A DNA stretch of 63,525 nt, the filler included, from Intoshia linei (taxonomy: Eukaryota; Animalia; Orthonectida): NCBI GenBank assembly GCA_001642005.1. It is 6 parts of 6 records of this genome, joined end to end, with 100 filler letters (N's around TTAATTAATTAA, not from the genome) between each part and the next. Parts side by side here need not be neighbours in the genome. Positions count along the whole stretch, not along the records: positions 48,726 to 53,131 come from LWCA01001949.1; positions 53,232 to 58,562 come from LWCA01001800.1; positions 58,663 to 63,525 come from LWCA01001884.1; 3 more parts are not named here. The stretch is one strand, 5' to 3'. Shown in pieces: positions 52,566 to 58,739 of the stretch; position 1 is the first letter of the stretch; each line of letters opens with the position of its first letter. Both the position numbers and the translations under genes were made by a program. The notes below the pieces were generated by a model. That model saw only the letters and a list, made by a program, of their open reading frames with translations, was not told the origin of the DNA and ran no database searches.

Positions 52566-53499
52566 TTATATAACCCAAAATTTAAATTAAAATTAAAATA
52601 TAAATAAAAATTTTACACATTCTATGTCACATATATACTTGAAGAGTCCCACCCTAACCATTCATGTTATATACATTTCATATTTTATTGATTTATTATG
52701 AAATTAAATTATAGTGGGATGAAATATTGGAAAAATGTGACTTGTGTGATCTGAAACGAGTTATATTGAGACGAACTCCATCATTAAACAATACAAACCC
52801 CTTTCCGTATACTGTATGTTATGGTTATGAAAATCTGATATTTGAGGTAATATAGATAGAGGATAATGAGGTTTTACTTTCTTTTTATATACATAACATA
52901 ATTTATATGTGTATGTATAATTTGGCAGAGTGTTTATAACTATTTCCAATATATACAAATATGAAATATTTAAAAAAATTAATTAATTTGTTTAGGTTTT
53001 GAAAAATTCTTGTATATCATCCATTACAATTTTATCTCACGATAAATTCAATTTATAATGAAAATATATAAATAAAAATTAAAGTATTAATTTTAATTTA
53101 ACTTGATTATTAATTATGTATTTTATGACGANNNNNNNNNNNNNNNNNNNNNNNNNNNNNNNNNNNNNNNNNNNNTTAATTAATTAANNNNNNNNNNNNN
53201 NNNNNNNNNNNNNNNNNNNNNNNNNNNNNNNTATGTAATTTAATGAGTAAAATCTTATTATTAGTTTTCATTGTTAGATTTTCATTTATTTTAATATATT
53301 TATACTTTATATATTATTATACATATATATAATATGTATCGGGTCGCATCAATTTTTATTTTAAACGTTTGTAATTTTAACCTCAAAAAATACTTTTTAT
53401 TTTTTAAGCCTTTTTCAAATAATCTGTCACATAAAATGGTTAAGATTAAGTTAAAATTCAGTTAGAAGCCGTTACAATGTATAGTCAATTATATTTTAG

Positions 53500-56400
53500 A
53501 ATGTATATTTTTTTATAATACACAATACTATGTAATTATTTCTGTCAGTGCTATGTAATGAGCAAGTTACACTATTATAACTGTGGGCTACTATTAAAAT
53601 ACTGTAGAAAATGTAGAAAAATTTTTTAATTTTGATGTTTTAGATTTAATTGTTACTTCTCTACAGTAGTAATGCAATAATGATTTACTATTCAAAAAGT
53701 TCAGACATTTTTATTATTCTTAAAAAATAAATTCACGTTGAAAATCTAACTTAAAAATTTTACTATTCACTATTATCAATTATTTAAAGAAGTGGTTCCC
53801 AAATTTATAAAATAAACTCAAATTTCTTTTCGTTTAGTATATTTTGGCTTATAATAATACACAATTACTTCATTTTGCACACTGTTATTTAACCTAAAAT
53901 TAATCTGGCTTAAAATACACTGCTCAATTACTTTTTTTGTTAGTGTAATGCTGTTTTTATATTGATATCAATTATCGTTCAATTTTTAGGTATAAAATTT
54001 TTCACGACAACCCCTCTTGAAATTTTGGTTCAAAAAAAATTTCCTAAAAACCCCCTTAAAAGTTTTGTTGAAAAAAAAATCTTAAAAACCCTCTTAAAGT
54101 TTGGTTTAAAATAAAAATTCTAAGAAACGCCCCTTCAAATTTGGTTTACAAAAATTTCTAAAAAAACCCCCTGAAAGTTTATTTATTTATCATCGGGATA
54201 TAATCCTTATAATTAACCAGGGGCAATTCTTTTAAATTTCTATGATTTCTTTAATAATGTATTCTTTAATATTGTATTTATTTTAAAACTGGAATTTAAA
54301 ATTGATATTTTATTATCTCATTTATATATGCCATTTAAAAATTGATATAATACTACATATGCAAATTGATATAATGTTTATTTGAAACATTTATTCTGCC
54401 TCAGTATCTCAAAAGCATCATATAATATATATAATAATTTATAATATAATAACTTATGGTACTATAACATGTATTATAAGAAAAATAAATTGTTTTAATT
54501 TATTGTAGGCTTGGCACTGCACTGATTATAGTTAATTGCAATATTTAATACTTGGATTTTAGTGGGTATATACATTTTTTACATTTTAGAGATATGGTAA
54601 ATACCTATTGGTCCTGTTACTACCTGATTTACCAATTTTAAATTTGTAAAAAATTAAGGGGCATAGTTTATTTTAAAAAAAACATCCCCTCAAAATGTAC
54701 TAAAAAAAGGTTATATTATTTTTTCAATTTGATTAAAGCCGCACCAAATTATCGAAAGTAATGCAACTTAACATAATTCCATATATTACATATCAAATTA
54801 TACATTGTATATTTATATGCAATGAATCCGGTTACCCTTGTCCGGGATCATGATAAAAAGTTATAAATTATAACTTATAATATACTGATAGAACATAAAT
54901 CTAAGATCCTTTTCTGGTTTCAAGTTAAGCATTTTCATGACACTTGGAATGATGCAAGTTTATACTTTGTATTTACTTTATATATACAAGATTACACTTT
55001 TATATGTTTATATTTTTATGTGTTGATGTATATGATGAAAAAATTTATAGCTTGTAATGAAATCAATTAATAAATATATTGTACTGAAAATTATATTACA
55101 ATAGAAATTTGATTATTATTATATATTATAGATGGTCATATCAAATTAAATAAATTTTAATATTTAAATTAAATAATAAATTTTATTTTGTTTAGATGGT
55201 AATATTTACATGAAAAAATGGTATTGAGATGAACAATATTAACCAAAAAGTTTAAGATGATAATGAATTATTTTTGGTATTATTTAGTGGGTATAATAAA
55301 ATGTTTTGATATAAATAATAATTATGATATACCCACAATTGTAAATTCGTTTTAGCTTGTAAATTATAAAACTAATTGCATGTATAAAATTACTATTTTT
55401 CTTAGGTAGTAATTAAATTTATAAATTAGAACGTAGTGTAATACCATTATCAACATTGACTCTTGAGATTTAAATAAATTTAAATATCCTGAAACTATAT
55501 ACCATATAATTCTGTAATATCGATAAAATTTCAAATCTATATTACTGAGTGTTTTGTCGTTTTAACAATGTTTGTAATATATACATTTCTGCAGATTTTA
55601 TTTTTAATTTAGGCTGTAAATTATATATTTTAACATTTAACATATGTACATATATATGTAAGTAATAGTTATAGATAATTATCTATATATAATAAAATTG
55701 TATAATAACGTGATACATAAATACCCTATACTTGTTACCTGAGAATGAACTTTTAATTTTTTGTAACTATCTCGTGTACAAGGATGATATTTAACAAGTC
55801 GCATTATTTATGAAACAACTTTATCTATTAAAAATTGAACGTTTTATTATAAAATTTTTTATAGCTAGCTTTTTCGAATATTTGATATAAATGTTAGATA
55901 TTTATATCTTAATAATTATTGAGAAATTAAATATGTGTTCACAAAAATATTAATATAAGTAATTATACGCTATTTAATAGATTCGCGTTATTTTTGAAAC
56001 TGTGTATTAGGGTGTCCACTTTTGACACTTTTTGTTGAATTAGAAAAAGTATATTTTACTGAACATTGGAAATGTAATTTAGAACGTATCCAAAACAAAA
56101 TTCCAAAGTCTGTAATTTTTTCAACCTAAAAATTTTTAAACTTTTTTAAAAAAACTAACTTTATTTAAATTTATGAATTAAAATTATTGAATTTAGACAA
56201 GAGTTTTAATTCCAATTTTTCATCTGTTCTAACTGTTGATCTTATAATTTCCATTTAGGGAACAGCTCGTTCCGATATTTCGTTGGTATAAATTACCGCG
56301 CATACTTGTTATTAAATCTCTAATTTTGACTTTTACTAATCCTAATGAAATCGGTCCCAGAGTGCACTTTGTCCATAAAGAATATAGTTCTATTGCAGTT

Positions 56401-58250
56401 TTATCACAGTAATAAAATTTTCATTGTGAATTATTTTCCATTTTTAAAAAATGATATCTTCCCATTACTTTTTTTATAGTAGGTAATCTCGATAATTACT
56501 AAGCGATTCACTGACCACAACTCCATAAGGACGCGTCCACCTCATACTTTTTTTGAATAATTCATTTTTAGATCTCGACATTTTAATTTTATATCATTAA
56601 TTTATGAATTATAAGATTGATAAATAAATAAAATAGTGTCACTAGGACATACTTGCAATAATACTAGTGTATGTAGGCTATCCATTTATGTGTAAAATTT
56701 TTTATGTGTTTTAACAAGATTATTTAATTGTTCAAGCCAAATATTAAGTTCTGGATTAATCATGAAACTTGAGATAAAAGAGTAAATAGACGAGGGGATA
56801 TTATTTTATGAGTCTATGGTTTTGTGGATTTAAAGATTTATTTTAATTGAATACAAATTCTAATAATTCAGTTATTCACAGTACAATTAAAATTATTATT
56901 AAAATTAGGAGATTGAGTTAACAGAATGTTCTATTACAAAAATTGATTATTAAAATTATAAGAGTCAGTTAACAGAATTTTCAAGTAGAACAACAATGGA
57001 CCAAATAAGGTGACGACACTTGTAACGATTGGCAGAGAAGAACTCAGATAAGTTCATCTTAAATAAAAATATGTCAAAATCGGGATCCAAACTCTAGCCA
57101 TGCAGCATAAAATTATATGACTATAACCACTCTGCCAGTTAAACATCACAAGTGAGTTATATCAAAAGTATATATTCGAATTTCGATTAGTACGATAGTT
57201 ATATATCACTACAACACTAATAAAGAGTAATACATTATTAACATTATAGCACATTAAGATTTAAATTAATAATACATTATTATTAATAATAAATAGTGTA
57301 ATAAAGTATAGTTTACATTTTTAAAAATAAAAATATCATAAACGTTATTAATATTAGGCGGGATTAATTTCAATTAAATGAATTAATTTTCACATATTCG
57401 TGATCAGTGCATAAAAACACACTTATATGCAAATATACTTTTCGATCTTTAAAAAAGTGGATACCCTAGTGTGTATATTATATTTATTTTTTTTAGTGGG
57501 TTACATTATTTAAATTTCATTATTACAATTATAAAATATAGGAAGTAAATTTAACGAAATATTAATATTTTTCCTAATATATACAGTAATAATGTATATA
57601 CAATGTACATGTATAATATATTAGCTGGTAATGATTGATTCATTTTCATTTTATACGCATTATATATTTTAATAAAGTTTGTAAGCCATTATTTTTAACA
57701 ATCTGTAAACATAAATAACTTAACGAAATAAAATAAATAAAATGCGTCTAGCAAGTAATAATAATAATAAGATAATATAATAATATTGAAAAAATTAATC
57801 ATTTTTAGTGATGGGTAATTAGTATTTATTGTACAATACATTATATTATATAATTAAAATTAATGTACTAAATACATTAAAAATCATTAAAATAAATTAA
57901 TTTACTTTTAATTGATTTTTATTGTAGTCAATGAATTCACCTTATGAGTTTTAATCATAAACTTTTGTATATTTTATGCCTAATAGTAGGTATACTTAAT
58001 ATATTTATTTTTTTAAAAACATTATTGTAATAATTCTTTTTAATATTTTTAGTATCATGTGATTATTTATAAAAATATGCTATATTAAGTTACATTCTAA
58101 GTTGACTTTAATTGTGAATTTTGTGGATTGTATTTTAATTTTAAATACTTTAAACATTTATATACATGTTTAATACATGATATATTTATATCAGAATGTC
58201 TATATTTTAAGTATAAAAATGTATTTCAATCTTTGAAACATTTTTAGATT
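53500..58250 (+). CDS. Predicted micro-exon gene, block 2: about 16-20 phase-1 exons of 3-6 nt; partial
   Basis: AG|exon|GT at 54563 TGG, 55051 CTT, 55132 ATG, 55196 ATG, 55288 TGG, 55356 CTT, 55406 GTA, 55613 GCT, 57497 TGG, 57542 GAA, 57625 CTG, 57678 TTT, 57752 CAA, 57809 TGATGG, 57987 TAG, 58248 ATT. Less certain: 53500 AAT, 53549 TGCTAT, 58053 TATCAT, 58195 AAT. The core translates in phase 1 to (LLL)AYDVACSLGTVSMMV. Confidence 0.7.
56008..57468. mobile_element. Non-autonomous hATm-like DNA transposon, copy 2, inside a micro-exon intron
   Basis: TIRs TAGGGTGTCCACTTTT / AAAAGTGGATACCCTA; 8-bp flanks CTGTGTAT / GTGTGTAT (7/8 match). Shares both arms with 16964-18820 but has a different internal segment. 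Confidence 0.88.
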
Positions 58251-58739
58251 GTAAATAATTACATAAACATTTATTATACCTGAGTGGTTTTTCAACTGAA
58301 CTGAACTATCATTATTTTAAAATTTATTTAAATTTAATTATAAAACAAATAATTAAGTATTTACCGCGTCATAATTATCATTTAATTTATTAAATTTATA
58401 ATAATATGATACTTATAAATTATATAAATTATAAATATTAACCCATATATTCCCAGTGTGACCATATGGTCACACAACATTACATTTATAAAAACACCTA
58501 TCAAATTAAAACAAAGTTAATTAAATATGAAAAATTAAATTAATTAGTATATTATATAACATNNNNNNNNNNNNNNNNNNNNNNNNNNNNNNNNNNNNNN
58601 NNNNNNTTAATTAATTAANNNNNNNNNNNNNNNNNNNNNNNNNNNNNNNNNNNNNNNNNNNNTGTAGGAAGGTGTAGTAAATATCCATAGATATTTACTA
58701 TTTACTAAAGATATATCGATACAATATGTTACATTAAGT

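Follow-up and report, generated by a model that had tools for sequence, protein, structure and literature searches.

The DNA at positions 53232-58562 (LWCA01001800.1) of a 63,525-nt stretch of the Intoshia linei genome assembly GCA_001642005.1 (the whole stretch is called the window below, and all positions count along it) carries two clusters of nucleotide triplets on the + strand, each triplet placed between a sequence resembling a splice acceptor and one resembling a splice donor. The clusters are best read, with a rough probability of 0.55, as part of a small + strand gene with an array of single-codon exons, where 13 or more codons in a row would each form an exon of 3 nt, accompanied by one exon of 6 nt. 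This reading is carried by a strong excess of acceptor-triplet-donor motifs over chance, by their restriction to one strand and one spacer, by the intron-like size of the gaps, by a contrast in base composition between triplets and gaps, and by analogous arrays in metagenome contigs.

Organization of the array

The piece was analyzed over its whole span and on both strands. It is very AT-rich, with a guanine-plus-cytosine (GC) content of 21.5%. About 14 units bounded by AG-NNN-GT were located, all on the + strand; 13 of them are 3 nt long and one is 6 nt long, and the lengths are thus all multiples of 3, as in micro-exon genes (MEGs). The units fall into two clusters, 55051-55615 (cluster 1) and 57497-57989 (cluster 2), and are listed in Table 1 together with two outlying candidates and the other features discussed below. 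All 14 units named in the original prediction were recovered at the positions given there. Upstream of each unit lies a T-rich tract ending in TAG (AAG once), and downstream of it GTA(A/T), replaced once by GTC and once by GTT. The gaps between successive units measure 78, 61, 89, 65, 47 and 204 nt in cluster 1 and 42, 80, 50, 71, 54 and 172 nt in cluster 2. They are intron-sized: 10 of the 12 span 42-89 nt, in line with the introns of mostly 42-90 nt that had been proposed, and the remaining two span 172-204 nt.

The isolated sites at 53500, 54563, 56083, 56480 and 58248 may be due to chance, given 1.6 expected occurrences (see below). A conventional first exon with an ATG start is placed at 54937-54957 as a speculative assignment, by analogy with the ATG exons found 5' of three of the metagenomic arrays (L072, L093 and L118).

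Table 1. Candidate exons and other features of the piece (window positions), and analogous arrays in metagenome contigs (contig positions)
Feature	Position	Strand	Context and remarks
TGG outlying candidate	54563..54565	+	ttttag TGG gtatat; 485 nt upstream of cluster 1, membership uncertain
Speculative conventional first exon	54937..54957	+	ATG + 6 codons, donor GTTTAT; in frame with cluster 1
CTT 3-nt exon candidate, cluster 1	55051..55053	+	tttatag CTT gtaatg
ATG 3-nt exon candidate, cluster 1	55132..55134	+	attatag ATG gtcata; weak donor GTC at 55135
ATG 3-nt exon candidate, cluster 1	55196..55198	+	tgtttag ATG gtaata
TGG 3-nt exon candidate, cluster 1	55288..55290	+	tatttag TGG gtataa
CTT 3-nt exon candidate, cluster 1	55356..55358	+	gttttag CTT gtaaat
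GTA 3-nt exon candidate, cluster 1	55406..55408	+	ttcttag GTA gtaatt
GCT 3-nt exon candidate, cluster 1	55613..55615	+	aatttag GCT gtaaat; final unit of cluster 1
Putative long intron between clusters	55616..57496	+	1881 nt; begins gtaaat, ends ttttttttag
Non-autonomous DNA transposon, hAT-like	56008..57468		1461 bp; element ends aligned
TGG 3-nt exon candidate, cluster 2	57497..57499	+	ttttttttag TGG gttaca; weak donor GTT at 57500
GAA 3-nt exon candidate, cluster 2	57542..57544	+	aatatag GAA gtaaat
CTG 3-nt exon candidate, cluster 2	57625..57627	+	atattag CTG gtaatg
TTT 3-nt exon candidate, cluster 2	57678..57680	+	aataaag TTT gtaagc; acceptor AAG (57676-57677), not YAG
CAA 3-nt exon candidate, cluster 2	57752..57754	+	cgtctag CAA gtaata
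TGATGG 6-nt exon candidate, cluster 2	57809..57814	+	atttttag TGATGG gtaatt; sole 6-nt unit; opens with stop TGA in phase 0
TAG 3-nt unit, cluster 2	57987..57989	+	ctaatag TAG gtatac; stop-codon exon or start of terminal exon
ATT outlying candidate	58248..58250	+	atttttag ATT gtaaat; 258 nt downstream of cluster 2, membership uncertain
L072 array	Ga0169931_10021451:117-2181	+	25% GC; AG-NNN-GT pattern and exon model
L093 array	JAEEGK010007630.1:9273-10076	+	18% GC; ATG exon, then about 27 single-codon units

Excess over chance

The motif YAG-N3-GTA occurs 17 times on the + strand of the piece and twice on the - strand. In 1000 dinucleotide shuffles its mean count was 1.6 (standard deviation 1.3, maximum 8), which puts the observed excess at about 10-fold. 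Among spacers of 0 to 15 nt, only the spacer of 3 was enriched (17 sites), whereas every other spacer yielded 0-4 sites on the + strand; direct juxtaposition (spacer 0, YAG-GTA) was found four times per strand, which is no enrichment. The more permissive motif AG-N3-GT gave 28 sites on the + strand and 10 on the - strand, against a shuffle mean of 8. A background from real DNA was drawn from the unselected strand of the loci retrieved in the metagenome scan described below (199 kb, <30% GC) and amounted to 0.29 YAG-N3-GTA per kb per strand; the + strand of the piece, with 3.2 per kb, has 11 times this density. The clusters themselves hold 7 sites (591 nt) and 5 sites (521 nt). A density of AG-NNN-GT no higher than background had been named as the result that would speak against the array; that objection fails, because the density exceeds both the real AT-rich DNA (3.2 versus 0.29 per kb) and the shuffles (17 versus 1.6).

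Repeat and composition tests

In a position matrix built from the 17 sites, no signal extends beyond positions -5 to +5, the T-rich tract with TAG and the following GTA(A/T) being all that the sites have in common. Tandem Repeats Finder reported no period of 45-95 nt on the piece. The repeat finder joined a single pair of units (55613 and 55356, 74% over 31 nt, family D7). With no extended similarity between units, and flanks that match the splice consensus only, the array is not a repeat. Some triplets recur with their adjacent flanks (TGG three times, CTT and ATG twice each), and a 13-nt core, TTTAGTGGGTATA, is present at both unit 54563 and unit 55288. These recurrences are a weak hint of old unit duplication.

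The 45 bases of the candidate exons have a GC content of 42%, the gaps one of 17% (p = 5.6e-5). T makes up 57% of the 12 nt that lead up to the acceptors, versus 47% at control TAGs. Directly observed are the excess of the motif, its confinement to one strand and one spacer length, the spacing of the units and this contrast in composition. Across the region of cluster 1 the GC skew is positive, and TCA is scarce on the + strand at 55232-56231 (2-3 per 500 nt versus about 8); both are strand asymmetries that could be consistent with a transcribed region. The - strand holds frames of 485 and 476 codons that are free of TGA. Such lengths arise because TCA is depleted on the + strand, and coding on the - strand in a ciliate code was rejected, the local depletion of C and TCA on the + strand accounting for these frames.

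Analogous arrays in metagenomes

Metagenome contigs were scanned for groups of three TTAG-N3-GTA(A) sites with spacings of 35-65 nt; on the piece itself this pattern has one match, with zero expected. The scan returned 120 loci, six of which were not repeat-derived (L072, L093, L084, L118, L122 and L094). Most of the 120 were set aside as satellites, (GTAA)n microsatellites or repeat arrays whose flanks are conserved, many of these arrays having a CRISPR-like period of 66 nt. No metagenome contig contained an exact 24-mer taken from the array region, and none of the six loci, which lie on eukaryotic contigs, is related in sequence to the piece.

About 58 AG-NNN-GT units follow one another in L072, recurring every 29-39 nt, and their flanks are not conserved. 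A dynamic-programming model resolved the array into 60 exons, namely 54 of 3 nt, two of 9 nt, one of 6 nt, one of 21 nt and two conventional 5' exons, separated by modeled introns of 21-36 nt. Every exon length is divisible by 3, no in-frame stop interrupts the 60 exons, and the predicted product begins with a signal-peptide-like stretch. In L093 the introns measure about 26 nt and the array runs off the end of the contig. L084 and L118 (- strand) represent one locus found in two different metagenomes (99.2% identity); L122 and L094 are its relatives, with identities of 70-82% and a conserved 5' exon. In this family about 34 single-codon exons alternate with tandemly duplicated introns, each about 72 nt long. 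An alignment of the units of the L118 family shows the donor, a branch-like TTTGGCTYA and the acceptor TTTTAG as the most conserved columns and the three exon positions as the least conserved ones, a pattern that would be expected if the splice signals were under selection and the codons were free or driven to differ. The analogous loci indicate that the architecture exists, not that the I. linei locus is expressed.

Long open reading frames (ORFs) in the neighborhood of the L072 array use the standard code, as do the long Asn/Gln-rich ORFs adjacent to the L093 array. Mimics of AG-N3-GT, comprising (GTAA)n microsatellites, satellites and 66-nt arrays, include L016, L048, L060, L101, L115, L041, L080, L113 and others; the contigs of L016, L048, L060, L101, L115 and others bear names which we take to be those of termite-gut metagenomes. 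Genome-wide screens for micro-exon arrays must filter conserved flanks, because such repeats mimic AG-N3-GT.

Reading frame and coding potential

Phase 0 was applied to the piece, since the 3-nt exons of the independent arrays read as whole codons. The predicted reading is L M M W L V A for cluster 1 and W E L F Q for cluster 2, followed by TGA or TAG. The frame would close at the end of cluster 2, because TGA opens the 6-nt unit or, failing that, through the TAG at 57987. The shifted frame of the original prediction (AYDVAC...) has no support beyond the fact that it stays open. Exact-product look-ups of the two longest ORFs of the piece gave no match. A search of the piece against Rfam 15 with expectation values (E) up to 1 gave 0 matches, and no transfer RNA-like feature of note was seen on it.

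Proposed mechanism

We infer that the array is transcribed, spliced and read as codons in phase 0. A T-rich tract with a terminal TAG would precede each exon, with GTAA or GTAT on its other side. The very AT-rich gaps would be spliceosomal introns recognized as units (intron definition); most measure 42-89 nt, two fall in the 172-204 nt range and one reaches 1.9 kb. A 3-nt exon coincides with the exonic part (-3 to -1) of the U1 binding site and abuts the acceptor AG, and the two sides can hardly be bound together. From this overlap on 3 nt it would follow that the introns leave the transcript in sequence, and that with every ligation the RNA gains one codon and the exon side of the next donor is completed. 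The joined codons would encode a short hydrophobic stretch rich in Trp, Met and Leu, ending with TGA or TAG where cluster 2 finishes. If the metagenomic arrays are a guide, growth probably takes place through duplication of units made up of an intron and a codon, and single residues could be gained, lost or skipped without a change of frame.

Beyond this locus, genes split codon by codon may constitute a hitherto undescribed and widespread class in several unrelated eukaryotic lineages, one member of which is held by the piece. Such genes would have runs of up to at least 54 single-codon exons, near-minimal introns, growth by tandem duplication of intron-plus-codon units and small, fast-evolving, possibly secreted products, and would have been missed by standard annotation. 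This generalization is tentative, and we rate its chances as a little short of even.

Weighing of the evidence

The claim of a micro-exon architecture is well supported as far as the arrangement is concerned, by the strand, spacer and shuffle controls and by the analogous arrays; its other part, splicing itself, has the standing of a prediction rather than of a proven fact. Several points weigh against single-codon exons in a protein-coding gene. Three of the 14 units have weaker signals (GTC, GTT and AAG). Thirteen codons are too few for a statistical coding test, and the absence of a stop in 13 triplets is not significant (p of about 0.25-0.4, a rough estimate and not the result of a tool). 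Three Trp and two Met among 13 residues are odd for a protein, and this excess may reflect a constraint on the donor side (G at -1) rather than coding. No conventional ORF of more than 56 aa is present on the piece, and neither a first nor a last exon was established there. The introns of the piece are without mutual similarity, and growth by duplication is therefore not visible at this locus. The analogous arrays, finally, come from other organisms, and their splicing is likewise predicted from sequence.

In one alternative reading, the array has real splice sites and is spliced now or was formerly, but its product is not a protein; it would be a non-coding RNA or untranslated region composed of micro-exons, or a decaying former array (pseudogene). 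The odd, Trp- and Met-rich peptide, the stop triplets TGA and TAG within the chain, the lack of an identified start or end exon and the weakened signals of some units all fit such a product. Non-coding exons, however, need no frame, whereas here the length is held at exactly 3 (once 6), and in the best analogue, L072, all exon lengths are multiples of 3 with a frame that is open over 60 exons; we consider a non-protein product unlikely, if worth keeping in view. The splice-like signals could also lie in one long intron or in untranscribed DNA and not be retained as exons, serving as decoy or cryptic sites, as stepping stones for stepwise intron removal or as some other strand-specific DNA or RNA motif. 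Given the footprints of U1 and U2AF, a 3-nt exon is sterically problematic for simultaneous recognition of acceptor and donor, which would agree with signals of this kind. But classical recursive sites consist of AG and GT with no spacer, an arrangement that is not enriched on the piece (four per strand), splicing at AG-NNN-GT necessarily leaves NNN in the RNA, and both the raised GC content of the triplets and the coding-like analogues favor retention. Non-retained signals appear slightly less likely again than a non-protein product.

Two further explanations have far lower standing. The locus might host small RNAs derived from its introns, as a mirtron cluster or as a host gene of small nucleolar RNAs (snoRNAs), with the exons as mere spacers. 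Host genes with tandem introns do exist, e.g. SNHG14 (PMC11608373), and the interior of the L118-family introns is moderately conserved; yet the introns fold no better than shuffles (z from -2.4 to +1.9, mostly positive or near zero), the Rfam search was without a match even at E up to 1, and a length of 42-89 nt (8-23% GC) leaves most introns too short to hold a snoRNA. Mirtrons in particular were rejected by folding: the short introns have minimum free energies of 0 to -10 kcal/mol (z from -1.8 to +1.9 versus shuffles), and there is no stable hairpin per intron. A small-RNA host is very improbable. Even less credit is given to chance in AT-rich DNA or to simple repeats, for instance (GTAA)n microsatellites or degenerate satellites, although TAG and GTA are common in DNA of this composition and (GTAA)n microsatellites and CRISPR-like arrays produced many false matches in the metagenome scan. 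This explanation was tested and is not supported: the excess is 10-fold, no shuffle reached half of the observed count, the sites keep to one strand and one spacer, and no repeat family covers them.

Comparison with known systems

The closest known kind are the MEGs of Schistosoma mansoni and other flatworms, which have symmetric exons of 3-81 bp and varied length as well as long introns (PMC10526429). As in MEGs, the coding part of the proposed I. linei gene would reside mostly in many tiny symmetric exons, with lengths in multiples of 3 that allow exons to be added or skipped without harm to the frame; MEG products are small and often secreted. The exon lengths of MEGs, however, vary widely and their introns reach 5 kb, whereas in the array nearly every exon is one codon and the introns are near-minimal, at 42-89 nt instead of kilobases. 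The array may be regarded as an extreme form of micro-exon architecture, and no relationship to MEG families in sequence is expected.

Isolated microexons of 3 nt are known from animal genes, e.g. MAP4K5 (PMC8632122) and RPS24 (PMC12686416). They share with the array the length of exactly 3 nt, normal acceptor and donor flanks and the insertion of one residue, but are single, usually regulated cassette exons between long introns and do not form runs of 7-54. Recursive splicing at the ratchet points of long insect introns resembles the array in having a donor almost directly after an acceptor, which implies that the flanking intron segments are removed stepwise and in order. At ratchet points, however, AG and GT adjoin each other without a spacer, and nothing of them is left in the messenger RNA, whereas the 3-nt spacer of the array would stay in the RNA and sites with spacer 0 are not enriched. 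SNHG14, the host of SNORD115/116 (PMC11608373), is similar in its long runs of repeated introns and its short, poorly conserved exons; hosts of this type carry snoRNAs in their introns, and their exons are non-coding and of varied length. The array differs from SNHG14 in having no RNA-family match, no stable fold and an exon length fixed at 3. A literature search found no report of serial arrays of single-codon (3-nt) exons; its coverage was incomplete and it is no proof of novelty.

If the array is spliced, its units stand, in series, at the physical limit of exon size. They would challenge the co-recognition of acceptor and donor on 3 nt and would imply an obligate order of intron removal. 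They would also point to a class of small genes that is invisible to gene finders and to aligners of RNA sequencing reads, and would offer a natural system for the joint gain of introns and codons, as visible in the family with duplicated introns (L084/L118, L122 and L094).

Inserted transposon and minor features

The length of the 1881-nt gap between the two clusters is due to the insertion of a transposon with target-site duplication. The terminal inverted repeats of the element start with TAGGGTGTCCAC and TAGGGTATCCAC, and it is flanked by an 8-bp duplication with 7 of 8 positions matching, CTGTGTAT (56000-56007) and GTGTGTAT (57469-57476). The element sits 20 nt ahead of the T-tract belonging to the 57497 acceptor. 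Without the element and its duplication, the gap between the clusters amounts to about 412 nt. The AG-N3-GT sites at 56011 and 57470 were created by the ends of the element and are by-products of it. The element has no ORF of more than 44 aa, and a Pfam search with ten ORF pieces gave no credible match and no transposase. It presumably belongs to hAT, an assignment based on the 8-bp duplication and the TAGGG termini, which we take to be traits of this group, and not on a transposase. Viral contigs scanned with the transposon end gave four matches, which were taken as chance.

A tandem repeat with a period of 39 nt (4.4 copies, 77% matches) occupies positions 54009-54180, and its consensus contains AACCCCCTTGAAAGTTTGG.

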